From sequence record MH595538.1: 64,000 bases of DNA; one strand, given 5' to 3'. The notes beneath the pieces were generated by a model, which saw nothing but the letters and a program-made list of their open reading frames with translations, ran no database searches and was not told the DNA's origin. The position numbers and the translations under genes are program-made. Shown piece after piece: positions 5,568 to 51,300 of this stretch (the first letter of the stretch is position 1; every line of letters starts with the position of its first letter).

Positions 5568-6389
5568 ATGACACCGATGAGTATATTCGATTCTGGCGCA
5601 AGTGTTATGGCGCTATATACGGTCACTAAAGATAAACATTTAACGACAAGGGTGCCGGTTCCCTTGGAAGCATTTTTTGATTCAATCAATGACTCCGAGA
5701 TTATCAAGAGATTAAAAGTCATTCGAGACATCTTCATGCTAGACAAAGAATCTCGTTATGAAGAACGTCCTCCGGGCACGGCAGATTATATCGTCGACGG
5801 ACAGGATGTCTACGATACGCCAGCTAATCCCCGATTATTTTACACTGACGAGGAAGGCTATAGTCGTCACGTTACTTGGGAAAATGATTTTAGTATCGGA
5901 AACAGGCATAAAATAAGCGACAGGTTCCAGACGGCAAAGCTCGTGAATTCCAGAGTCGGACAATGGCCGATTGTTGTAAAGACTCCTTGCAATGTTCATC
6001 TGAGAGGTAAGATATTGCAGGTTACTGGGCACTCAGCAATGAACTGTCTCAATACGGAAACCGGTGAAATCACTACCGTGTCAGCACATCTTCAGAAATT
6101 AAAGGATCTGATCTTAAATGACGTGGATGAGCAAAGTGCTGAACGTGTATCTCGTTTGTTGACTGATGCTAAACTAGAAGTAGGCTACGGACAACTGAAT
6201 TTCAAAATCAATTTAGAATACTATCCGGCATTTGGTTTTACGTTTAATTTGCACCACCGCATGGGTCTACAGGGATTTCATTTTAACGGCTGTGGGTTAT
6301 CAGTAATGGAAATCTCATGGACAACTGCAACGGCTGTAAGAATCTACGAGCTGGCCCAAAATCATATAAAAGCAATCACTGTAAACTAA
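5568..6389 (+). CDS. Hypothetical protein
   Basis: Long ORF; start moved downstream of the terminator to the ATG at 5568 (5556 is the alternative). Confidence 0.75.
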   Translation: MTPMSIFDSGASVMALYTVTKDKHLTTRVPVPLEAFFDSINDSEIIKRLKVIRDIFMLDKESRYEERPPGTADYIVDGQDVYDTPANPRLFYTDEEGYSRHVTWENDFSIGNRHKISDRFQTAKLVNSRVGQWPIVVKTPCNVHLRGKILQVTGHSAMNCLNTETGEITTVSAHLQKLKDLILNDVDEQSAERVSRLLTDAKLEVGYGQLNFKINLEYYPAFGFTFNLHHRMGLQGFHFNGCGLSVMEISWTTATAVRIYELAQNHIKAITVN

Positions 6390-6398
6390 GGAAAACAT

Positions 6399-7265
6399 AT
6401 GAGTTTTAAATTTGTATACGTCGACGGACGTGCTTCTCTGATTAATACTACGGCTACTGAAGGAGAAACAGGAATTATCGATGTCTCCTCTCTGATGCAT
6501 TATATTAATGTCGTCAAACTAAGTCGAGACGCTTCTGACTTTTCTACACGAATGGAAATCCTCGCTTATGTCATGACGAAAATGTGTTTTACTGAGGGAC
6601 ATATAATTGATAATGACAGTGCCTACGGGGAAGTATCTCGAGCTGCTATTATTAATCTGGGTCATGAGAAAGTTCTTCATAGACCCAAATCGTTAGTTGT
6701 TGCCATGGTAAATCGACGCAGCGAATACGTGCGCGATAAGATGACTCCTAGAGAAAATCCGGAATGGACTTGCCCTGGTCTTTTACTGGCTAACGTGATA
6801 GAGTGCAGTGAATTGCAATCCAATATAAACCAAGATGGAGAGTTGATTCTTTTCAAAAATAATAACACTGCGGCAGAAGAAATTGCATTCTTACGTGTCA
6901 ATATGGAAGAACGACGTATTGAATGCGAGATGGTCAATCCTAAGGAATACTTCAGGACATCATTGATGGCACCAGGTAAGATTAAGCGAGCAATGGCATC
7001 TCCTGGCATCGGAGCTGCTATAGATCATATCGCAGCTAGTCTATCAGTAAATAATACCAAGCCAGTTGATATTTCCTTGAGAGACATCTATGGTGATTCC
7101 AATTGCGGGATTTCTGTTTCGATAAACTGCAGCAACAATATTGAAGCTAAGTTTCGTACGCTTGGTGTGAGCAAGGAAATAGACTTCAAAACAAAATCTG
7201 ATTATGACAAGGCACTGAATACTGTCATTAAAGATTTAGAAAATGCAGCAACTCGTTTTATCTAA
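6399..7265 (+). CDS. Hypothetical protein
   Basis: 288-aa ORF, SD AAGGA. Confidence 0.8.
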   Translation: MSFKFVYVDGRASLINTTATEGETGIIDVSSLMHYINVVKLSRDASDFSTRMEILAYVMTKMCFTEGHIIDNDSAYGEVSRAAIINLGHEKVLHRPKSLVVAMVNRRSEYVRDKMTPRENPEWTCPGLLLANVIECSELQSNINQDGELILFKNNNTAAEEIAFLRVNMEERRIECEMVNPKEYFRTSLMAPGKIKRAMASPGIGAAIDHIAASLSVNNTKPVDISLRDIYGDSNCGISVSINCSNNIEAKFRTLGVSKEIDFKTKSDYDKALNTVIKDLENAATRFI

Positions 7266-7278
7266 AAGAAATAACTTA

Positions 7279-7307
7279 TATTCTCCTTCCCAATGGGAAG
7301 GAGAATA
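7279..7307 (+). terminator. Intrinsic terminator
   Basis: TATTCTCCTTCCC-AAT-GGGAAGGAGAATA with a downstream T-run. Confidence 0.75.
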
Positions 7308-7368
7308 ATTAATCCTTTTATTTTTTTAACAGATATGAAAAATACTGTGGTTCATTCAGCATATAGAT

Positions 7369-7385
7369 CTATATCACTGTAATGA
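7369..7385 (+). promoter_or_regulatory. Putative phage promoter motif, copy 2
   Basis: CTATATCACT-GTAA-TGA after a terminator. Confidence 0.7.
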
Positions 7386-7410
7386 GTTTAATCAATAAAG
7401 GAACATTATT

Positions 7411-7773
7411 ATGTTAGTTAAAAGCACCGAAGAATTGTGCCTATTGATGGCGGAAAAATGTATTGCAGCATGGAATGACATTCCTGGCATACTTGATTCT
7501 GGCGTTATCTTCACACAGGTAACTAAGAACCTGGCGTTTGATATTTCTGTCTTTCCAGAACGCGTAGAGATCTCCGGAGTAATGGGCTTATTGCCGAGCA
7601 CACTTATTATCTTTGCAAACGAAGAACCTGAAATTAAAATTACAGGTACCGATGAAACTGATGAAACATTCATCTTTCCAGAAATCGAAACGTATCTAAA
7701 GATGATGCGCATCGCTGAAGGGATCATTCGTACAATCATGCAGGAGAAAGAACTTTGGATTTCCAAAAACTAG
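7411..7773 (+). CDS. Hypothetical protein
   Basis: 120-aa ORF, SD AAGGA. Confidence 0.75.
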   Translation: MLVKSTEELCLLMAEKCIAAWNDIPGILDSGVIFTQVTKNLAFDISVFPERVEISGVMGLLPSTLIIFANEEPEIKITGTDETDETFIFPEIETYLKMMRIAEGIIRTIMQEKELWISKN

Positions 7774-8306
7774 CTACTGAAACGCCTAGAAATTTACCGC
7801 CTGTAGATAGGGTTGTCACATTGGGCCCTTATGGCATTCCTTATCTAGAGCAGTCTTATATACCAGCAATGACTACAAAGGTAGCGCGATCACTAGTTGG
7901 ACGTACATACATGGGTGAGTACATGCAGCCTGATCTAAGGAAGCTTTCTTTAGTGGAAGGTTATCAGCGCATAAGAACCGTAGAACGTCGTCGCGCATGT
8001 TTGAAAGCGAAGGTACTTGAAATCACTACGTCGATGCTCGGCGAGTGGGAAGTGTTCTATATCAAGGTACATGTTAAAGAGTTTGGTCCAATGGCTGAAT
8101 ACTTTCGAAAAGATGTATCTTTAGATTCATCCTTTAAATTGCATTTACGATGGGATATCATAGGATCGAACAGACGTCATCCTTTCAAGCTCAATGGTAA
8201 AAGCCACGTTTATCCTGAATCTAATGTTACTGCATTTCATGCCTTTGATTACGGAGGATATCAACTGACCCCTCTTGTAGATCTCACAACCGGAGAAAAG
8301 AAATGA
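7755..8306 (+). CDS. Prohead-protease-like protein (phiKZ gp175 / T4 gp21 fold), probably inactive
   Basis: GEYMQP...QRIRTVE...AC...FGPM pattern resembles GEYGHP...RI..I..VC..H...GP; catalytic His and Ser not evident. Confidence 0.4.
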   Translation: MDFQKLATETPRNLPPVDRVVTLGPYGIPYLEQSYIPAMTTKVARSLVGRTYMGEYMQPDLRKLSLVEGYQRIRTVERRRACLKAKVLEITTSMLGEWEVFYIKVHVKEFGPMAEYFRKDVSLDSSFKLHLRWDIIGSNRRHPFKLNGKSHVYPESNVTAFHAFDYGGYQLTPLVDLTTGEKK

Positions 8307-8716
8307 TTAAAGAACTAGGTCCTTATAACGTCTTCGTCGATGCTGGAGAAGGCAAGTTAAAAAACTTGTATTTTAGCTATGAAGCATTGACCAATTGTGT
8401 AGGCAAAGAGTACTTTGTAACGTTTCCAGATAAACGAGAAACGGCTGCAGATTACGAACATGTGGCGATCAGTGAAATTGGCGCATCGTTTAAACTCAAA
8501 CGATACCATAAGCGAGAAGACGGTCTTTATCTAATCGGAGATATGAAACCTGCTGGTAAACAAGCAGATCGTTTGCAAGCACTGTTAGAAGAAGAAACAG
8601 AATTAGGTACGTTCGGTATTCGTGGCATGTCTAACCATATCTTAACCGAAGAAGGTAATAAGATCTATAAAATGATCAGCATTACCGCAATTGATTGTTT
8701 TCCTAAGCAATCCTAA
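8303..8716 (+). CDS. Prohead-protease-like protein, probably inactive
   Basis: LIGDMKPAGKQADRLQALLEEETELGTFGIRGMS resembles the G..TP.G..L..L...G.SSRG.G segment, with the Ser missing. Confidence 0.4.
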   Translation: MIKELGPYNVFVDAGEGKLKNLYFSYEALTNCVGKEYFVTFPDKRETAADYEHVAISEIGASFKLKRYHKREDGLYLIGDMKPAGKQADRLQALLEEETELGTFGIRGMSNHILTEEGNKIYKMISITAIDCFPKQS

Positions 8717-8759
8717 CTCGCGACAATAACGTCGCATCACTAACTCAATGAGGTGTCTC

Positions 8760-9185
8760 ATGAAAAAACTACTGCTGACTGTGAATGATGTGTATCGTCA
8801 TATCAATAAGCTAAATCTCCCTAAAGAACTGCAGGTGGCTGCAAGAACATTCTATTTCTTATCCGAAGAGATAAGCATGGATTATATCGCAGGGCGTGTT
8901 GACTTTAGAGTCGTGGCTTATGAACGTAATGACGCAATCGGCTTTGCTATCATTCACAAAGATGACTTCCATGGCAATTATCGCTTTAATAAGATCTATA
9001 ACAACTTTCTAGACATCAAACTAGATGGCGTTTATGCAATGGCGCAAGGCAAGGCATTTCCTCGCATCTCTATTGATGCATGGAAAGGCATGTCCGCTTT
9101 TCGCTGGAGCGATATCTTTAGCCAGGCATTGGCTAATAGAAAGCACCATATGAAAGGCAAAGAAGTCTTCAAAAAGATTATCTAA
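8760..9185 (+). CDS. Hypothetical protein
   Basis: ORF with SD GAGGTG before MKKLL. Confidence 0.75.
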   Translation: MKKLLLTVNDVYRHINKLNLPKELQVAARTFYFLSEEISMDYIAGRVDFRVVAYERNDAIGFAIIHKDDFHGNYRFNKIYNNFLDIKLDGVYAMAQGKAFPRISIDAWKGMSAFRWSDIFSQALANRKHHMKGKEVFKKII

Positions 9186-9191
9186 CTGAAA

Positions 9192-9214
9192 GGAGGCCTT
9201 CGGGTCTCCTTTTT
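9192..9214 (+). terminator. Intrinsic terminator
   Basis: GGAGGCC-TTCG-GGTCTCC-TTTTT. Confidence 0.85.
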
Positions 9215-9284
9215 ACTTTATATGCTGTAACATACCAGAGCAATAAGTTGAATCATTCTCAAAAAGGATATAGGAATATTTGTT

Positions 9285-10049
9285 ATGAGTAATAACAAAG
9301 CGTTAATTGCAAGAATTAAACATACCTTGGTTTTTATTAAAGATGCCAACGGGTTTGTGCAAAACTCCAGAGAGATCATTAAATCAATCTTTGAATCAGA
9401 GTCGGTAGACAACTCTACGTTATGGAGCGACTTACAGAAATTATTGCGTATTTTAATCCATGGTGATGCTGACCCAGCGGTAGCGCAGGTTCTAGGCCCG
9501 GTCTTGAGTGGACTAAAAGGGAAAGGCGATAATAAAGTCGAAGCCATTGAGCGTCTTATTCAACTGATGGAGATGACCAAAAGCTACGAAGGCGAGACAG
9601 TAGTGAGTAACTTAACCGCTGCTCTCTATCAGGTCCTTTTGGAAATCAAGCCGATGTATGAACCCAAGCCTAAAACAATTAAGCCAAAAACAGAAAGGCC
9701 TAAGCCTCAAAAAGTAAAAGAGTGCAAAACCGATAAGGTACTCAAGAAAAAGATCGAAGAAGCAACACCTGATAGCAAAGACTATCTTAAAGCTTGGACT
9801 ACAGAGCCTGGAAAGAAACCTGAGCCTGAACCTGAAGTAGAGCTGCCAGTCGATAATGATATGTTGTTAGACGACGCAGATGGGGATTTCGAAGACACTG
9901 ACTATGACGCAGTATCTAAAATACCAGAACGCATGTCTCGCGGTCAACGTAAAGCATGCGATGAATCTCGTCGCCGCATTGAAGCACTAAAAGAGATTCG
10001 ACAGTTGGGTTTAACCATTGAAGAAGCGAAAGAAGCGGGGTTATTATAA
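9285..10049 (+). CDS. Hypothetical protein (helical N-terminus, K/P/E-rich linker)
   Basis: 254-aa ORF with SD. Confidence 0.8.
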   Translation: MSNNKALIARIKHTLVFIKDANGFVQNSREIIKSIFESESVDNSTLWSDLQKLLRILIHGDADPAVAQVLGPVLSGLKGKGDNKVEAIERLIQLMEMTKSYEGETVVSNLTAALYQVLLEIKPMYEPKPKTIKPKTERPKPQKVKECKTDKVLKKKIEEATPDSKDYLKAWTTEPGKKPEPEPEVELPVDNDMLLDDADGDFEDTDYDAVSKIPERMSRGQRKACDESRRRIEALKEIRQLGLTIEEAKEAGLL

Positions 10050-40085: not shown

Positions 40086-41921
40086 ATGTATGATAATCTC
40101 ATCACTCGCCTACTGCTTAAATCAGACGGCGGAGAAACATTGTTGCCTTGGTTATTAACTGCCGGTAACACGATCACACAAGAGCGCATCTTGCCTTGGG
40201 ATCAAACAAATGCTTATGCTGAAAATGAACTGGTTATTAACCCGTCTGACAATCACGTTTACCATGCTAATGCCGCTATCGTTGCCAATACCGCATGGAA
40301 CGCTGCAGACTGGACACAGGTCGATACTCACGTAGGTTACGTTCAGCCTTATGATGAAAACCGTCAATATGAACCTGATGATCTTGTTCACTTCAATGAC
40401 AAACTGTTCGTAAGTAACAAAGCAACTACTGGCACGTTTGTTGTTGCGGACTGGGTTGAACTATCTAATGACGGACAGATGCAAGACATCTTCGTTTACG
40501 ATGACGACTCGGAAACAGGTACACGCAATGTTACCGACATCTATTTTGTAACTGCTGTTCCTGCTCCGTATGTACACATCCTTTACGATACAATCGTAGG
40601 TGTCGGTTCATCTTTAATGTCATCTATCGTGAAACTCAACAGTGTTTGGATTGATGCCGATGACAGCCCATTCCCATTCCGTGGTGTTGATATCCTAGGT
40701 CAAGCAAACCCTGGCGTCACACTACAGAATGTAAAAGACCGCATCGCGGATGACATCGCTCTAGCCAACGGCAATACGCTATTCATAGTCATGGCAGGTA
40801 CTAGTGACTGTAACACTTATCTAGCACCAGGCGGCATTGATGATAGCGACACAGGCGATATTCTGTCATGGGAATCAATGACTACCGAACAGAAAACGAC
40901 TGCTGAAGGTTTAATGCGTGACATCGTCACTGCGCTACAGCCTCATGGCGACGTAGCTATCGCATCAATCCCTTATGTGGATCCACGTAGTGCTTTGTCC
41001 ATTATGGCCGATAAAGGCCGTAACTTGCATGCAGGTTCATGGAATGACAATCTAGTTAGTCCGCTATGTGAAGAACTAACACCTAACTGGTATGATGCAG
41101 GTAACGGAGCTCCCGTATTCGACTTCTACTCTGTAGGCTATGCAGACCCATCTATTCTAGATGACGATAACCTGCACTACTATATGGATTACGATTACGA
41201 CGCGACTGAGATCGGCTATGCCGATGGCGACGGTACGTTCTCAATGCGTGAATACATGATCAAGCGACTTGCTGATATGGGTAACATTCCTGCTGCTCCG
41301 TTCGATACTGATAAGTATGAGAACCGTATCATTATCAACCTGGCTGATGATCCTACGTATACGCAGCGTCCAGCGATCCGTCGCAAGGCAAACAACATTG
41401 CTGTAGACAAAGACGCAGGCAACCAAGAAAACCTCACTGTGGGTTTCCTAGAAGGCGGTACGGTACCTGCTGGCTTAGCATTGGCTATCGAGTTCACTAG
41501 CCCTGGCGTTATTCGCCGAGGCATTACTGCCGATTCGATGCACTATGATGAAGGCATTCGTGATCCGAATATCCTAAATACCAGCATTAACATTATCAAC
41601 AGTCGCACAATGACGATCAAGATTGCTAATGCAGGTAAAGGCCGTATTCAGATGGCTGGCCTATATCAGTCTACTGCTGAAAACGGAATGGAGACCGAAG
41701 TCACTTTCACTGATGACAATGGCGCTAAAACCATTACGTACAAGAACACACTAGACAACTCTGGCAGCTACACAGTAGAAGACTACTTTGGTGAAGCAGA
41801 GTATGACGTGCGTGTTGCTGGCGAGCTGGTATTGTCGTTTAACGGCATTGGCACCGATAATGCTTCTGACGACAGCAAATATTCTGGTGTTTCTGGCATC
41901 CTATTGGACATCGAAAAATAA
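40086..41921 (+). CDS. CBM5/12-like repeats plus SGNH/GDSL hydrolase plus C-terminal beta-sandwich; putative virion appendage
   Basis: Two W-terminated repeats; SGNH blocks I (VGVGSSL), II (GQANPG), III (AGTSD), V (DDNLH). Confidence 0.65.
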   Translation: MYDNLITRLLLKSDGGETLLPWLLTAGNTITQERILPWDQTNAYAENELVINPSDNHVYHANAAIVANTAWNAADWTQVDTHVGYVQPYDENRQYEPDDLVHFNDKLFVSNKATTGTFVVADWVELSNDGQMQDIFVYDDDSETGTRNVTDIYFVTAVPAPYVHILYDTIVGVGSSLMSSIVKLNSVWIDADDSPFPFRGVDILGQANPGVTLQNVKDRIADDIALANGNTLFIVMAGTSDCNTYLAPGGIDDSDTGDILSWESMTTEQKTTAEGLMRDIVTALQPHGDVAIASIPYVDPRSALSIMADKGRNLHAGSWNDNLVSPLCEELTPNWYDAGNGAPVFDFYSVGYADPSILDDDNLHYYMDYDYDATEIGYADGDGTFSMREYMIKRLADMGNIPAAPFDTDKYENRIIINLADDPTYTQRPAIRRKANNIAVDKDAGNQENLTVGFLEGGTVPAGLALAIEFTSPGVIRRGITADSMHYDEGIRDPNILNTSINIINSRTMTIKIANAGKGRIQMAGLYQSTAENGMETEVTFTDDNGAKTITYKNTLDNSGSYTVEDYFGEAEYDVRVAGELVLSFNGIGTDNASDDSKYSGVSGILLDIEK

Positions 41922-43534: not shown

Positions 43535-44428
43535 ATGACGCAAACATTAGATGATATTCGAGTACTTAAACGCAATGGTAAATTGGAACCAGTAGACCTG
43601 GATAAGATTCACCGCGTATTACATTGGGCTGCTGAAGGCCTAGCCGGTATCTCAATATCCGACGTCGAATTAAAAGCTCACGTACAGTTCTTTGACGGCA
43701 TCGAGACTAAAGACATCCATGATCTGTTAGTCAAAGCGGCAGCTGAGCTCATTACCGCAGAAGAACCAGACTATCAGTACTTCGCTGCACGCCTAAAGCT
43801 ATTCTCATTGCGCAAAGAAGCATACGGTCAGTTTGAACCACCCAAACTGGTTGACCACATTAAAAACATGATTGACATTGGCAAGTATGACATGGAAATA
43901 CTTGGCATGTATACGCCAGAAGATTTTGAATACTATGAAGGCATCATCAATCACTGGAATGACATGAATTATGCTTACGCAGCCATGGAACAATTCTCTG
44001 GTAAATACTTAGTCAAGAACCGTGATACTGGCCGTATATATGAGACCCCTCAATTTATCAATATCATGGCCCCTTTGACCATGTTTGGTAAATATCCAGA
44101 GCCTCAGCGTCGTGAACTTGTAACGGATTTCTATCAAGCTTTGGTTGACGGTAAGTTATCTCTACCAACACCTATTATGTCAGGTGTGCGAACACCTACT
44201 CGCCAATTCAGCAGCTGTACTCTTATCGATTGTGATGATACTCTAGAGTCTATTATTGCGACCACTGGCGCTATTGTCCGCTATGCGGCTAAGCGAGCAG
44301 GCATTGGTATCAACGCAGGTCGTATTCGCGGTATTGGCTCTCCTATCCGTGATGGAGAAGCAGTATCGACAGGGGAAGTTGGTTTCCTTAAATTGTTTAA
44401 CTCGGCAGTGGGATGCTGCTCACAGGGT
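43535..44428 (+). CDS. nrdA: Ribonucleotide reductase class Ia alpha subunit, exon 1 (298 aa)
   Basis: ATP-cone VLKRNG; PTPIMSGVRT, FSSCTL; ends CSQG. Confidence 0.96.
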
Positions 44429-44882
44429 GAATATTGCCCCGCATAGAGGTAACTCTATGTTGTAAACTCCTTTAATTGCTGGGACTCCCTAAAGCTTGCT
44501 TGCCTCTTTGAGGAGCCGAAAGGCAGAAACAAGTAGCAAGATGGGCTAAGACGATAGTAAGTCTAAGGTCTTGATAATGGGACATCAGCCTTCGCATCAA
44601 GTAATGTGATTCAACGACTATCGAAAGCTTAACCTGAGAAGAAATATCTCGGGGGATGATAAGCTTACCTGTGGGTAAGTGAAGCGAGTAGAGTACGGCC
44701 CAAGCGGGTGGGTTCCCAATCCCTTAAATGGAAACAAGGAGGGTCCTTGATTTGGTAACAGAATCAAGGATCGTGATATAGTCTCGTCAGTCAAACTTAT
44801 CCCTTTCGGTTTGACATTCTATGGAAACATAGAGCTGCAGGTAATGCTGCGGACTGGTCTAGCGAACCAGTTGAAGATTACG
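44429..44882 (+). mobile_element. Group I intron (IA2-like, 454 nt, no ORF) in nrdA
   Basis: Removal restores CSQG|GVRKGSA in frame (762 aa in total); exon-terminal U pairs with GCCC (P1); P2 CATAGAG-GTAA-CTCTATG; R CAACGACTAT and S GATATAGTC; ends in G. Confidence 0.92.
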
Positions 44883-46277
44883 GGTGTAAGAAAGGGATCA
44901 GCAACTACCTTTTTCCCGATATGGCACATCGAAGCCCGTCAATTAATGGAACTTAAAAACAACCGTGGTGTTGAAGAAAACCGTGTTCGTACTATGGACT
45001 ATGGTTTCCAGATTAACCGTTTCTTCTACGAGCGCCTACAGCGTGGTAAGACTATTCGTTTATTCTGTCCTTCAGAAGTTCCTGGGCTATACGAAGCATT
45101 CTTCCAAGATCAAGCTGAGTTTGCAAGACTGTATGAAAAGTATGAAAAGATGCCTCACTTGCGTCATCATGATGTTGCCGCTAAAGATCTATTCGGTACA
45201 TTGATGCAGGAGCGCGCTGGTACAGGCCGTATCTATATACAGCACGTCGACCATACAAACATGTACGGTAATTTCATTGAAGAAGAAGCGCCAACGTTCA
45301 TGTCTAACCTGTGTGTAGAAATCACACTGCCTACTAAGCCACTCAAGTTTGATAACGACCCAGAAGGTGAAATTGCTCTATGTACTTTAGCGGCATTTAA
45401 CCTTGGCGTGATTACACTCGAAGAGTTCCCTCGTTTGGCTGAACTGGTTGTGCGTTTCCTAGATGCGCTATTAGACTATCAAGATTATCCTTCTGAAGCA
45501 GCACGTAATTCATCGATGAAGCGCCGTACTTTAGGGGTTGGCATCATCAACTATGCATACTGGATCGCTAAGAATGGATTTAAGTATTCAGACGGCAGTG
45601 CAAACAACATGACTCACCTTTGGATTGAGAACATGCAGTACAGCCTAATGAAAGCATCAGTTCAGTTGGCAAAAGAGAAAGGTGCTTGTCCTGCGTTCAA
45701 TCAAACTAAGATGGCCAAAGGTATTCTCCCGATTGATAATTACAAGCGTGAAGTCGATGAACTGCATACCCAAGAACTAACTTGCGATTGGGAAGGTCTG
45801 CGTGCCGATATCGCTAAGTATGGTATGCGTAACTCTACTATGTCTGCGTTCATGCCTTCTGAAACATCATCTCAGATTGCTAATGCAACAAACGGCATTG
45901 AGCCACCTAACAAGCTTATGACTCGTAAGGCATCTAAAGACGGTATTCTTTCCCAGGTTGTACCTGACGTCGAGAACTTACGTGACTCTTATGAGCTTCG
46001 TTGGAACATGCCAGACAACATTGGTTATATTCACCTAGTTGGCATTATGCAGAAGTTCGTATGTCAGGCAATATCTGCGAATACGAACTACGATCCTGCT
46101 AAGTTCCCAGGCGGAAAAGTGCCAATGAACGTTATGCTTAAAGAACTCATGACGTGTTATAAATATGGTGTTAAAACTCTGTACTATCATAACACGGAAG
46201 ACGGTAGCAACGACCCAGTAGCTAACGCTATTGAGAAAGAAGACGAAAGCTGCGGCGGTGGTGGCTGTAAGATTTAA
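44883..46277 (+). CDS. nrdA: Ribonucleotide reductase class Ia alpha subunit, exon 2
   Basis: SNLCVEI active site, PSETSSQI, KTLYY, C-terminal CGGGGC. Confidence 0.96.
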   Translation, partial: GVRKGSATTFFPIWHIEARQLMELKNNRGVEENRVRTMDYGFQINRFFYERLQRGKTIRLFCPSEVPGLYEAFFQDQAEFARLYEKYEKMPHLRHHDVAAKDLFGTLMQERAGTGRIYIQHVDHTNMYGNFIEEEAPTFMSNLCVEITLPTKPLKFDNDPEGEIALCTLAAFNLGVITLEEFPRLAELVVRFLDALLDYQDYPSEAARNSSMKRRTLGVGIINYAYWIAKNGFKYSDGSANNMTHLWIENMQYSLMKASVQLAKEKGACPAFNQTKMAKGILPIDNYKREVDELHTQELTCDWEGLRADIAKYGMRNSTMSAFMPSETSSQIANATNGIEPPNKLMTRKASKDGILSQVVPDVENLRDSYELRWNMPDNIGYIHLVGIMQKFVCQAISANTNYDPAKFPGGKVPMNVMLKELMTCYKYGVKTLYYHNTEDGSNDPVANAIEKEDESCGGGGCKI

Positions 46278-46288
46278 TCCGGCACCAT

Positions 46289-46319
46289 AAGGGGAGGTGT
46301 GAATACTTCCCCTTTTTTT
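46289..46319 (+). terminator. Hairpin plus T-run between nrdA and nrdB
   Basis: AAGGGGAGGT...ACTTCCCCTT-TTTTT. Confidence 0.6.
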
Positions 46320-46354
46320 AACTTATTAAAAATTGAATTTATCAGGAGACTAAA

Positions 46355-47059
46355 GTGTCTAAACAGGTTATCTTCAAAGCAGGTCCAACAAACTACCTTA
46401 ATCAACCAATGTTCTTCGGCGACTCTGTATCAACCGCTCGCTATGATCAGCAGACATATCCGTTCTTTGAAAAGCTTATCGAAAAGCAGCTTTCATTCTT
46501 TTGGCGACCTGAAGAAGTAGATGTCTCTGCAGACCGTCGCGATTGGCAAGGACTCTCTAAAGCGGAGAAACATATCTTTATCTCTAATCTTCAGTATCAG
46601 ACACTGCTAGATTCTATCCAAGGCCGTAGCCCCAATATCGCATTCTTGCCAATCACCTCAGTACCTGAAGTAGAGACATGGATTGAAACCTGGTCATTCT
46701 CAGAAACGATTCACTCTCGTTCGTACACGCATATTATGCGTAACATCCTCACAGGTGAAGAAATGGACGAGGTGTTTAATGGCATTACTACCATTCCTGA
46801 AATCATTGCTCGCGCCGAGCGTTTTGGCCGTGCTTACGAAGAACTGATTGAATGCAACAATGCTCTGCTGCAGTCTAAAGTAGACGTACCTAACCGAGCT
46901 GAATTGGAGCGTGAACAAAAACGTAAGTTCCTGCGTGCCCTTGTAACAGTAAACGGTTTAGAAGCTTTAGCATTCTACGTATCATTTGCATGCTCATGGG
47001 CATTTGCCGAACGTTCTATCATGGAAGGTAACGCTAAGATCATTAGACTCATCGCCCGT
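46355..47059 (+). CDS. nrdB: Ribonucleotide reductase class Ia beta subunit, exon 1 (235 aa)
   Basis: GTG start with SD AGGAG; [27 protein letters not shown]; ends IIRLIAR. Confidence 0.96.
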
Positions 47060-48197
47060 TAATATGGCGGCTTCATGGAGTGATCCATGAATGCACACCT
47101 CGTGAAATCAGGGGACTCCGGTAACAGGAAATCCTGAGGTTGCTCTATATCAAATCACCTCCATATAAAACGTTTTGGTTTTATAGCGAGAGGTTTTATA
47201 TGAAATGATTTGTTATGGTGAAATATGGATGGATCATAAAGAAAGACCTGATGATTATATTGTCAGTAATTTTGGCAGGGTCTTTTCCAGAAAAAGTTGT
47301 ATGATGTTAAAGCAGTCACTAACCAAGGCAGGATATCTAACTTATGGGAGTAGGTTAGGATCGGTCCATCGTTTGATTGTGACGCATTATTTAGGACCCA
47401 TTCCCAAAGGAATGGTAGTTAATCATAAAAATGGAATTAAGACAGATAACTGGATTGATAACCTAGAGATAACTACTCATTCTGCTAATACCCAACATGC
47501 TTACGATACGGGTTTAGCCAAAGGGAAAAAGGGCGCTGCTAACTCACAGGCTAAAGTAACAGAAGAAATCATTCTTGATATTTATAAGATGTTCGAAGCT
47601 GGCTTTAGTAACCAAGACATTAGTAAAAGATACGGACTGCATGACCGCTACGTATCTCTCATAAGACATGGAAAAAGATGGAAGTATCTGTATGTAAGAT
47701 ACGGTAAGACTTTCCCACGATCGTATGAATTTGTCTTTCGAAAAGAACAGATTCTTATGGCAAGGGAACTATTACTCAAGGGCCATAACAATTTAACTAT
47801 TGCAATGGCAACCGGAATAGAGAAGTCTAACATATCCAGATTCCGACATGGAAAAATGAATGCTTGGTGTGAGTGGATGGCAATATACGACAGAGCAACC
47901 GCAACGACTATCGAAAGCTTAACTTGAGAAGAAATCTCTCGAGGGATGATAAGCTTACCCGCGGGTAAGTGAAGCGAGTAGAGTACAGCCACAAGCTTAT
48001 GGTGGTCCTGAAAGGGATAGCGGAGAAATCCGTAATGGAAGCGCGAGGGGTCTCTTATCTGGTAACAGGGTAAGAGATCATGATATAGTCTGGCCCGGCC
48101 TTAACGGCCTATCTGTGAATACACAGGTATCCTAGGTAATGCTAGGAGCAGTATATGAAACTATACGGGTGTGTTTTGCGAACACACTGAACATACG
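47060..48197 (+). mobile_element. Group I intron (IA2-like, 1138 nt) with HNH homing endonuclease in nrdB
   Basis: Removal restores IAR|DETLH (iron ligands; 374 aa in total); exon CCGU pairs with GCGG (47067-70); P2 TTCATGGA-GTGA-TCCATGAA; R and S elements; ends in G. Confidence 0.93.
47205..47927 (+). CDS. Intron-encoded HNH homing endonuclease (I-HmuI-like architecture with two HTH-like repeats)
   Basis: VSNFGRV; VHRL...VNHKNGIKTDN..DNLE..T...N..H; 3' end overlaps the intron R element. Confidence 0.92.
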   Translation: MICYGEIWMDHKERPDDYIVSNFGRVFSRKSCMMLKQSLTKAGYLTYGSRLGSVHRLIVTHYLGPIPKGMVVNHKNGIKTDNWIDNLEITTHSANTQHAYDTGLAKGKKGAANSQAKVTEEIILDIYKMFEAGFSNQDISKRYGLHDRYVSLIRHGKRWKYLYVRYGKTFPRSYEFVFRKEQILMARELLLKGHNNLTIAMATGIEKSNISRFRHGKMNAWCEWMAIYDRATATTIESLT

Positions 48198-48617
48198 GAT
48201 GAAACTTTACATTTAGCCGGCACACAGTACATGATCAATGAACTGGCTAAAGGCGCTCAAGGAGCTGAATGGAAAGAGCTCTTTGAAGAAATGCGTGATG
48301 AGCTAGGTGAGATCATGCTAGCTATTGCCATGCAGGAAAAAGAGTGGGGTCGCTACCTGTTTAAAGACGGTACGATGATCGGCCTTAACTCAAACATTAT
48401 AGACCAGCTTATCGAGTACTTCTGTAATATCCGTTGTGCGGCTATTAAACTAGATAAGCCTTTTGCAGAACAGAAAAAGAATCCAATTGGATGGTTTAAC
48501 TCTTGGATTCAATCCGCCGGTGTTCAAGTAGCACCGCAAGAAACAGAGCAGTCTTCTTACCTTGTCGGTCAAGTAGATTCTACTATTGATGAAGACGCTC
48601 TAGACATGGATCTTTAA
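48198..48617 (+). CDS. nrdB: Ribonucleotide reductase beta subunit, exon 2
   Basis: DETLH, QEKEWGRYLF, QVAPQETEQSSY. Confidence 0.95.
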   Translation, partial: DETLHLAGTQYMINELAKGAQGAEWKELFEEMRDELGEIMLAIAMQEKEWGRYLFKDGTMIGLNSNIIDQLIEYFCNIRCAAIKLDKPFAEQKKNPIGWFNSWIQSAGVQVAPQETEQSSYLVGQVDSTIDEDALDMDL

Positions 48618-49437: not shown

Positions 49438-49460
49438 TGCACCGGCTTTTTGCCGGTGCA
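49438..49460 (+). terminator. Hairpin
   Basis: TGCACCGGC-TTTTT-GCCGGTGCA. Confidence 0.65.
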
Positions 49461-49507
49461 TGTTATTTTATTGAATCTGATGACTATAAAAACCCAAGGA
49501 GTTGATT

Positions 49508-51232
49508 ATGTCACTTATTCGCTTAGTTAAGCTAGTAGACGGCGTTGCAACAGGACTGGGCACTGTCATTAGAACACAAGACAGTCCATATCCTGTACAA
49601 GCTAGTTATAACGAATTTAGACCCACAGAGAACTATCTTAAAGATCATGTCACTTTCTATAACGGAGAGTTATATCAGGCCAAGGCAGACATTGCCGCTG
49701 GTCAATGGAATATCGATCACTGGACAGCGGTCAACGAGTACGTAGGTTATATACAGGAATATCAAGCAGGAGAAACTTACAATCTTGATGAGTTTGTTAT
49801 CCATAATGATCGTCTTTACAAAACCAAAGAGGATGGAATTACAGGCACATGGGATGTAAGTCGATGGGAAGAACTAACGGCTAATACGACTGTCGAAACC
49901 ATCAATGCCTACTTAATCGACAACCACCAATTAAATAAACCTTTATCTAGTGCGGTACTAAAAGGGAATGTAAGAAAGCTGTACTTAGCAGACGGTTCTA
50001 TTCCTGGAGAAACTAGTGGAGTAACGGCTAAAATAAAAACACTTATTGGCTATTACCCTACATGGCGTACAGAGTTCTTTGGCTCAGGTAATACCGACCT
50101 AACGATTCGTAAGCCGTCTAATAGTCCTAGTGCTTTTAGCCACGTTAAACTATCCTTTGCTCACACTAAGCCTGTGTTTGATCCTACTAGTCCCGATTTG
50201 ACCGGGATTGGTTTTAATACTCAATCTGGATTAGAAGCTGCCTTTAAAGAAGACATCGGTAAACTAAGAGCTCGTGGTACAAAAGTCTATCTGTCTGTAG
50301 GAGGAGCCACTTACGGAAGACCTGACGTTGCTGATGCGTGGACTGGACTTATTGATGAATCCGACATTATTGATGCTGGCAGCAATGACTATCCTGCACA
50401 GACTCCTTACACTAAAGCTTTAGTTGATGTGATCGAGTACTTAGACTTGGATGGGATTGATCTGGACTTTGAAGATGATATGGCCTGGCATACTAACGTT
50501 CGAACAACATGGCTAGACAATCAATATAAGCTACTGCGTCTATTTAGGTTCATCGCTGATACAGCAGGCACTGCTTTAGGAAGACCTATTGCGACAGCTA
50601 CTGCATGTTGGTCAACCGGATGGGATAGCAGCGCAGGGAGCGTTGCAGACATTGCTACTCCAGACTACGATGGAAACAAGGTTTCTTACTTTGGAGGATC
50701 GGCTGGTCGAGACAGAAGTCTGTACGGAGGTTACACATCCGTAGACTTAGGTGGCGTGATGAACGCATCCAGCTTTGTTGATGTCTTTGTCAATATGACC
50801 TATGATGCAATATTTTCAGATTTTGCAGGTAATGAAGATCCTGCTGGGCCTTTCGATTCTAACTACGATCCCGTTAAAGCTTATGAGCAGTGCCGCAGCA
50901 TCATTACCGATCCAAATAAAATCTGTACCATAGGGGTTACTAACAATCCAGGGTTTGGAGATCATGAACTTATGGTCTACAGTAACCAGTGTGCTCCCTC
51001 AGGGCCTCATCCTACGGTTTTAGACAAGGATCAATACGGTAACGTCATTGACGCTCCTTTCTCTGTTCAGAGAGTCACTGAGGCGATTGAAGCAAATCTC
51101 ACCCAGTATCCTAATGACGGAATTATTCAATGGTCGATTTATGCGATTGATCCGACAACGTCATATGTCCATGAGGGGAATGCCGAAGCATCCTGGAAAG
51201 ACATCGTGGATTATGTAGCAACTAAAATGTAA
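49508..51232 (+). CDS. CBM5/12-like repeats plus GH18 chitinase-like catalytic domain
   Basis: YLSVGGATY (SxGG), LDGIDLDFE (DxxDxDxE), VNMTYD, IIQWS; two N-terminal repeats closely similar to those of 40086. Confidence 0.85.
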   Translation: MSLIRLVKLVDGVATGLGTVIRTQDSPYPVQASYNEFRPTENYLKDHVTFYNGELYQAKADIAAGQWNIDHWTAVNEYVGYIQEYQAGETYNLDEFVIHNDRLYKTKEDGITGTWDVSRWEELTANTTVETINAYLIDNHQLNKPLSSAVLKGNVRKLYLADGSIPGETSGVTAKIKTLIGYYPTWRTEFFGSGNTDLTIRKPSNSPSAFSHVKLSFAHTKPVFDPTSPDLTGIGFNTQSGLEAAFKEDIGKLRARGTKVYLSVGGATYGRPDVADAWTGLIDESDIIDAGSNDYPAQTPYTKALVDVIEYLDLDGIDLDFEDDMAWHTNVRTTWLDNQYKLLRLFRFIADTAGTALGRPIATATACWSTGWDSSAGSVADIATPDYDGNKVSYFGGSAGRDRSLYGGYTSVDLGGVMNASSFVDVFVNMTYDAIFSDFAGNEDPAGPFDSNYDPVKAYEQCRSIITDPNKICTIGVTNNPGFGDHELMVYSNQCAPSGPHPTVLDKDQYGNVIDAPFSVQRVTEAIEANLTQYPNDGIIQWSIYAIDPTTSYVHEGNAEASWKDIVDYVATKM

Positions 51233-51260
51233 TATAAGGGCCGGATGTCCGGCCCTTATA
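51233..51260 (+). terminator. Hairpin
   Basis: TATAAGGGCCGGA-TG-TCCGGCCCTTATA. Confidence 0.7.
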
Positions 51261-51283
51261 TGTATCTCAATTTCTTTTTATAC

Positions 51284-51300
51284 CTATATAACCATGGTGT
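51284..51300 (+). promoter_or_regulatory. Putative phage promoter motif, copy 7
   Basis: CTATATAACC-ATGG-TGT. Confidence 0.65.

Follow-up and report, generated by a model that had tools for sequence, protein, structure and literature searches.

A GH18 chitinase-type domain joined to a tail-fibre-like anchor module in the Vibrio jumbo phage BONAISHI

The ORF238 locus

Vibrio phage BONAISHI is a 289-kb phiKZ-like jumbo phage that infects the coral pathogen Vibrio coralliilyticus and is described as strictly lytic (PMC6207643). The stretch of DNA analysed here, a window of 64,000 nucleotides (nt), is identical (100%) to positions 186001-250000 of its sequence record, MH595538.1. This report concerns one gene of the window, ORF238 (AXH70979.1; 49508..51232, + strand), which was deposited as a "hypothetical protein" of 574 amino acids (aa) and in which an N-terminal anchor module, a linker and a glycoside hydrolase domain of the GH18 family can be recognized. 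The reading frame is real and intact: it opens with an ATG at 49508, closes with a stop codon at 51230-51232 and is preceded by a ribosome-binding site, AAGGAG, located 6 nt 5' of the ATG (49496..49501, + strand). The genome paper lists only two glycosidases, of families GH23 (ORF23c) and GH19 (ORF138), and leaves ORF238 without a function (PMC6207643). A literature search found no paper tying BONAISHI to GH18 or to ORF238, and the full-length protein matched no family in PHROGs or in NCBIfam.

A GH18 domain with a complete catalytic apparatus

Residues 176-574 (50033..51229, + strand) are assigned to a GH18 (beta/alpha)8 catalytic domain by an AlphaFold2 model, Foldseek, profile searching and Pfam. 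The model, built from a 38-row alignment, has a mean predicted local distance difference test (pLDDT) score of 86 and folds this part of the protein as a TIM barrel of alternating strands and helices. The hallmarks of the family, all encoded on the + strand, follow one another along the domain: GYYPTW at aa 181-186; SVGGATY, which contains the SxGG motif (aa 263-269, with the motif itself at S263-G266; 50294..50314); the catalytic motif DGIDLDFE, of the form DxxDxDxE (aa 315-322; 50450..50473), comprising D315, D318, D320 and the catalytic glutamate E322; MTYD, the MxYD motif (aa 430-433; 50795..50806); and, towards the C-terminal end of the barrel, W542 (51131..51133), the tryptophan that GH18 enzymes conserve on the DGxxxW strand. 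None of these hallmark residues varies among the seven closest homologues, at just 27-54% identity to ORF238, and a wider alignment also shows the recurrence of the clade-specific motifs AxWSTG and AGRER/AGRDR.

Structure comparison gives the same assignment. Foldseek matches in the PDB are nearly all GH18 proteins, with chitinases at the top (probability 1.0, E-values down to 6e-10), and the identity of ORF238 to any solved GH18 structure in this search is 13-17%. The top matches are mostly single-domain bacterial enzymes that lack the alpha+beta insertion, namely those of C. violaceum (4tx8) and L. lactis (3ian), ChiL (6kst), Moritella Chi60 (4w5z), B. cereus ChiA (3n11) and a Pseudoalteromonas enzyme (6k7z), with which ORF238 shares the TIM barrel, the DxxDxDxE, SxGG and MxYD motifs and the tryptophan. 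A profile built from the seven closest homologues likewise matches PDB chitinases (E 2.4e-8). ORF238 itself falls below the gathering cut-off of the Pfam GH18 family (PF00704; 23.2 vs. 29.6 bits), with a match confined to the N-terminal third of the profile (positions 2-114); its close homologues carry precomputed PF00704 assignments, and its cellular relatives pass the cut-off at 44-47 bits.

A six-frame translation of the window contains a second DxxDxDxE string, DDADGDFE, near nt 9870 (+ strand, frame 3), which stands outside any GH18 context; shuffled sequences contain a mean of 0.1 such strings. Because a second, chance copy sits in the same window, the DxxDxDxE motif alone is weak evidence.

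We conclude from the evidence at domain level that ORF238 has a genuine GH18 domain with a complete catalytic apparatus, which bears out the proposal, made in an earlier sequence-only reading of this DNA, of a GH18 chitinase with an intact catalytic motif. The invariance of the catalytic residues at only 27-54% overall identity argues for selection for catalysis in BONAISHI and its six closest relatives, and ORF238 is apparently an active chitinase-type enzyme. GH18 enzymes act by substrate-assisted retaining catalysis, a chemistry that suits chitin or another beta-1,4-linked N-acetylglucosamine (GlcNAc) glycan; poly-N-acetylglucosamine, which is beta-1,6-linked, and the Vibrio polysaccharide VPS do not suit it.

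An N-terminal module of the tail-fibre type

The first 143 residues (49508..49936, + strand) form a module that was delimited with AlphaFold2, phmmer and PHROGs. It comprises a conserved arm (MSLIRLVK..., modelled as a beta-hairpin at aa 3-22) and, from there to about residue 143, a beta-rich part with two CBM5/12-like repeats of the kind found in phage tail fibres. A linker predicted to be disordered (aa 144-175; 49937..50032, + strand; pLDDT <50) leads to the barrel.

In a phmmer search of the PDB, residues 39-138 of ORF238 line up collinearly with gp124, the tail spike of Milano (8FQC; residues 32-132 of gp124; E 2e-4), and the module also matches the long tail fibre gp015 of phage 7-7-1 (9RKV; E 1e-3); the weaker matches are N-termini of long-tail-fibre proximal subunits, and a genuine chitinase's chitin-binding domain (2rts) is reached only at E 0.17. 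Both tail proteins are recovered as well by the ORF238 family profile, the full-length model matches 9rkv_M in Foldseek (E 1e-7), and in PHROGs the module falls to phrog_972, "tail fiber protein proximal subunit" (E 3.7e-4).

What these N-termini do in the two solved particles is established. Residues 1-175 of Milano gp124 are its tail-binding module, the globular domains of which are wedged into the baseplate while a 25-residue arm touches sheath and wedge proteins (PMC10811340), and residues 1-120 of 7-7-1 gp015 fix that fibre to the baseplate (PMC12796354). The two proteins resemble ORF238 in having a collinear N-terminal module (approximately aa 30-135), and the boundary between module and body lies near residue 175 in ORF238 and in the solved tail proteins alike. 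In both tail proteins the module anchors the protein to the baseplate or sheath. They differ from ORF238 in their bodies: these are beta-helix trimers that end in jelly-roll tips, and no enzyme activity is evident in them, whereas ORF238 carries a GH18 barrel behind a flexible linker.

The relationship of the repeats to chitin-binding modules deserves separate consideration. The N-terminal module scores 21 bits with Pfam CBM_5_12 (PF02839), below the gathering cut-off of 26.2, which relatives with tandem arrays of the repeat do pass. CBM_5_12 is matched by 43 of 50 proteins that have the repeat, and the PHROG matches of the 50, where labelled with a function, are nearly all "tail fiber protein." One subdomain within the head-binding region of CBA120 TSP1 is folded like chitinase A1's chitin-binding domain (PMC3966878), so that a CBM5/12-like fold can be regarded as an established building block of tail-spike anchors. 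By sequence comparison, the module of ORF238 is closer to the baseplate-binding N-termini of tail proteins than to true chitin-binding domains. The "structural-type stalk" of the sequence-only reading is therefore retained in one respect, the homology of the N-terminal 143 residues to particle-binding tail modules, and given up in another, the model consisting of an anchor and a disordered linker with no stalk fold, be it a coiled coil, a beta-helix or a collagen stalk.

One anchor with several bodies

The N-terminal module of ORF238, from about residue 3 onwards, also heads three other BONAISHI proteins: ORF229, ORF168c and the 155-aa ORF169, which is the anchor alone. ORF229 (40086..41921, + strand; 611 aa) joins the module (aa 3-138) to a different and possibly SGNH-like C-terminal body, and matches 9rkv_M at E 5.5e-7. 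ORF168c (MH595538.1 178849-180666, = L005:28849-30666, - strand) is its paralogue, with 45% identity between the two and a body of about 470 aa. In hhalign comparisons, these bodies are weakly similar to a GDSL/SGNH hydrolase (E 3e-5; the alignment extends over the common N-terminal module as well), GVGSS being aligned to the GDS block and AGTSD to the GTND block, and ORF229 and ORF168c are possibly divergent esterase-tipped fibres. In the AlphaFold2 model of ORF229, just the N-terminal module is folded (mean pLDDT 40; body <50). ORF229 was also considered as a hidden GH18 enzyme and rejected as such, since hhalign against the GH18 family aligns the N-terminal module only.

The module recurs in a related 83.7-kb metagenomic phage contig (L009), in which a gene for a clear GDSL/SGNH hydrolase (6303-7976) lies directly upstream of a GH18 orthologue (8001-9758) and the two products have their N-terminal 170 residues in common, at 40% identity. 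The extreme N-terminus (M..IIRL..Y) is kept across these different anchor-bearing enzymes. Conversely, the GH18 proteins of phage sm033 (L008:5596-7269), P0008 and P0048 start with another conserved N-terminus, MIFPILPG; the first 150 residues of the sm033 protein have only a weak PHROG tail-fibre match (E 3e-3), and this type of N-terminus suggests a swapped anchor. One anchor with several heads, together with one head on several anchors, is the evolutionary signature of phage receptor-binding proteins.

The CBM5/12-like repeat is also found on its own, in BONAISHI ORF141 (as a tandem array), ORF142 and ORF164. ORF141 (L004:45070-48201 = MH595538.1 145070-148201) is a repeat array of 1043 aa that scores 94.5 bits in Pfam and matches phrog_972 at E 4e-18.

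The tail spikes TSP1-4 of CBA120 and those of G7C are built on a comparable plan, a conserved N-terminal particle-binding module being combined with enzymatic C-termini that are exchangeable within one and the same phage. The known heads of such spikes are beta-helix hydrolases or lyases, sialidase propellers and SGNH esterases. No GH18 head on a phage fibre was found described in our literature and structure searches. The "virion chitinase" of Bacillus phage Basilisk was considered as a precedent and rejected, since a later analysis recognised nothing but an FNIII domain in it (PMC6145125). Taken singly, both GH18 enzymes and enzyme-tipped phage fibres are well known, and their combination has probably not yet been described.

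Distribution, phylogeny and catalytically dead relatives

The ORF238 family has few members: 5.8 billion proteins, when searched, yielded seven, and among 50,697 phage records the only carriers are BONAISHI, four near-identical "Yong" jumbo phages of V. mediterranei and vB_VpaM_sm033. No relatives were found when IMG/VR was scanned with the family alignment, and a scan of 185,579 species genomes returned only three distant cellular GH18 proteins, none of them in Vibrio. An exhaustive HMMER search collected 238 proteins at E <1e-3, which fall into two classes matching either residues ~35-130 or residues ~167-550 of ORF238. A word-indexed search found ORF238 itself only when queried with residues 1-175, and added one protein with residues 176-574.

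The cellular relatives of the catalytic part, one of which is annotated in Crenobacter cavernae, differ from ORF238 in their N-terminal partner, which is CBM_2, ChitinaseA_N or another secreted-protein module in place of the phage fibre anchor. Most of them start with a signal peptide or a lipobox. In none of the phage-clade proteins was a signal peptide seen, as judged by eye and from basic hydropathy rather than with a dedicated predictor. The nine GH18 proteins of phage architecture group together in a maximum-likelihood tree as a single clade (support 100/96), set off from the cellular enzymes, so that, unlike the bacterial GH18 enzymes, they make up a separate, phage-only lineage.

Two orthologues from related phage-like contigs, P0012 and P0023 (L013:2941-4590 and L014:8001-9734), keep the N-terminal module and a body of equal length and have lost the DxxDxDxE, SxGG, MxYD, WSTG and tryptophan motifs. 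For P0023, the loss was confirmed by full-length pairwise alignment with the intact Yong protein (E 1e-66). Both sit on very long tree branches. The contig of P0023 has matches to phiKZ internal proteins, and the gene lies in the same PhoH/GH19-endolysin neighbourhood as the GH18 gene of Yong XC32. The architecture has thus outlived catalysis in these two proteins, which suggests that what the family has in common is a structural or binding role.

Other viral chitinases are of a different kind. In a viral structure library, GH18-type matches to ORF238 came mostly from giant and insect viruses, the sole named phage protein with a full-length match being a weak one from a Lactobacillus phage. 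The baculovirus ChiA (5dez) and the chlorovirus vChti-1 have the GH18 fold in common with ORF238. Baculovirus and chlorovirus chitinases are soluble enzymes that act on a chitin-containing host. The chitinase of the Pseudomonas prophage KT1 belongs to GH19 and supports the use of chitin by the lysogenic host (PMC11788074). ORF238 differs from all of these in belonging to a lytic phage and in being fused to a tail-fibre anchor.

Gene neighbourhood and expression signals

A GC-rich hairpin followed by a T-rich tract, resembling a terminator, lies upstream of ORF238 (49438..49460, + strand), and a second hairpin with a 13-bp stem begins at the last base of its stop codon (51232..51261; strand not applicable). 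Two families of upstream motifs were found in the genome. The motif TTAAAACAT precedes capsid-type genes and is present upstream of ORF104 and ORF121, and a longer motif, TAAAATTTnCnnTTAAAACAT, is common to the upstream regions of ORF141 and of the major capsid gene, ORF113; TAAAATTTnCnnTTAAAACAT/TTAAAACAT is a putative late promoter, and ORF141 may be an abundant fibre protein. The promoter-like motif TCTATATAACCATnnTGA is strongly enriched and lies upstream of no fewer than 12 genes of unknown function, at a distance of 35-78 nt, with copies in the window at 51284-51294, just downstream of ORF238 and before ORF239, and at about 59480. The region upstream of ORF238 has neither TTAAAACAT nor TCTATATAACCATnnTGA and contains only the degenerate CTATAAAAACC. 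A sigma-70 promoter scan performed no better than on shuffled sequences, and ORF237, used as a synteny query, had no homologue in any other phage record.

The ribonucleotide reductase genes of the same region (43535-48617) are split. The alpha subunit is annotated as two ORFs (43535-44446 and 44811-46277), as is the beta subunit (46355-47062 and 48171-48617), between whose parts lies an ORF for an HNH/NUMOD4 homing endonuclease (47205-47927). These look like intron or homing-element insertions; an Rfam search of the split genes detected no intron.

Is ORF238 an enzyme-tipped fibre of the virion?

The reading that we favour, and to which we give roughly even credence, places ORF238 on the virion as a tail fibre or spike with an enzyme at its tip, which would cut a beta-1,4-GlcNAc polymer. 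The analysis shows the GH18 fold and its catalytic residues, the homology of the anchor and its reuse in several proteins, a modularity typical of receptor-binding proteins, and the lack of a signal peptide; the virion location, the oligomeric state and the substrate of the protein are inferred. The grouping of the phage-architecture proteins in a single clade and the survival of the architecture in the catalytically dead orthologues also speak for this reading. Docking on the tail or baseplate, as in Milano and 7-7-1, would fall to the first ~25 residues together with the beta-rich module (aa 1-143), and the flexible linker of about 30 residues would tether the GH18 head. The head would cleave beta-1,4-linked GlcNAc polymers by substrate-assisted retaining hydrolysis, its substrate being either chitin, the default for this subfamily and a substratum of vibrios, or a GlcNAc-rich glycan of the host envelope, and the enzyme would thereby help the particle to reach its host or attach to it. 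Beside ORF229 and ORF168c, which are possibly esterases, and ORF169, the anchor alone, ORF238 would belong to a series of exchangeable heads that use a common anchor. That SGNH esterases occur on this anchor too may point to an acetylated polysaccharide as the target.

Several points weigh against a place in the virion. The homology of the anchor is modest (E ~1e-3 to 1e-4), and the repeat on which it depends has true chitin-binding modules among its relatives as well. As a rule, GH18 barrels are monomers. The neighbours of ORF238 are ribonucleotide reductase, HNH and hypothetical genes, outside any tail module, a location that is a weak test, since structural genes are scattered across the annotated BONAISHI genome. 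The gene is bracketed by hairpins as a stand-alone cassette would be, and its upstream region lacks the capsid-type motif of ORF113, ORF104, ORF121 and ORF141. Finally, a literature search found no virion proteomics for BONAISHI or its GH18-carrying relatives, and our literature and structure searches found no enzymatically characterised GH18 tail spike.

The chief alternative is that ORF238 is a soluble auxiliary chitinase that stays outside the particle, builds up in the cell and is freed at lysis, its repeats binding chitin and its GH18 domain degrading it, whereby progeny would be released from chitin particles or biofilm, or neighbouring hosts would be fed. We consider this possible, and less probable than attachment to the virion. 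The arrangement CBM5/12-linker-GH18 is the classical layout of a bacterial chitinase, and the weak Pfam CBM_5_12 match fits it, as do the chitin- or cellulose-binding modules (CBM_2, ChitinaseA_N) borne by the cellular relatives of the catalytic domain and the position of the gene amid metabolic genes as a hairpin-bracketed cassette. There is also a precedent in the prophage GH19 chitinase that boosts the growth of its host on chitin (PMC11788074), but BONAISHI is strictly lytic (PMC6207643) and any benefit to the host would therefore be indirect. Moreover, ORF238 has no signal peptide, and thus no means of export before lysis; its N-terminal module is closer to tail-fibre anchors than to true chitin-binding domains and, including its extreme N-terminus, is common to proteins that are not chitinases; and catalytically dead orthologues persist in related phage contigs.

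A role as a cell-wall hydrolase, in which the GH18 domain would serve as an N-acetylglucosaminidase on host peptidoglycan, like the GH18 spore-cortex enzymes of Bacillus, and aid genome entry or lysis, appears improbable. Some GH18 enzymes do act on peptidoglycan fragments, and a few genes separate the GH18-family gene from that for the endolysin in Yong XC32 and contig L014. The proposal is disfavoured because such functions are already covered in BONAISHI by ORF23c, a GH23/M23 tail lysin, and ORF138, a GH19 endolysin (PMC6207643); in addition, the best structural neighbours of ORF238 are all chitinases, and a Pfam scan of the protein found no peptidoglycan-binding domain.

Least probable of all, if by little, is a lectin-like receptor binder whose GH18 fold, like that of chitinase-like lectins, mainly binds a glycan and hydrolyses it incidentally: P0012 and P0023, on their very long branches, keep the architecture without the catalytic motifs and would fit such a role, which is disfavoured for BONAISHI because every catalytic residue is invariant in this phage and its six close relatives at 27-54% identity.

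The favoured reading, that of a fibre carried by the virion, can be taken one step further, to a scenario that we regard as speculative and rather doubtful. Several fibres on one anchor, among them an active GH18 enzyme and SGNH esterases, would let the virions of BONAISHI-type Vibrio jumbo phages stick to and cut chitin or a chitin-associated matrix in the places that vibrios inhabit, a foraging strategy that may be called "phage adherence to chitin," and the chito-oligomers so released might alter the behaviour of the host.

Significance

Vibrios live on chitin, which governs their colonisation, competence and nutrition, and, given this connection, a demonstration that the virion carries the enzyme would be notable. 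BONAISHI is a proposed agent for the biocontrol of V. coralliilyticus (PMC6207643), and the way in which it finds and enters its host therefore has practical weight. If ORF238 proved to be soluble instead, a strictly lytic phage would be carrying an auxiliary gene for chitin breakdown, which is ecologically interesting and less surprising. If the virion-attached reading is true, GH18 would join the known enzymatic heads of phage receptor-binding proteins, and a chitinase on the phage particle would link phage predation directly to the chitin niche of vibrios.

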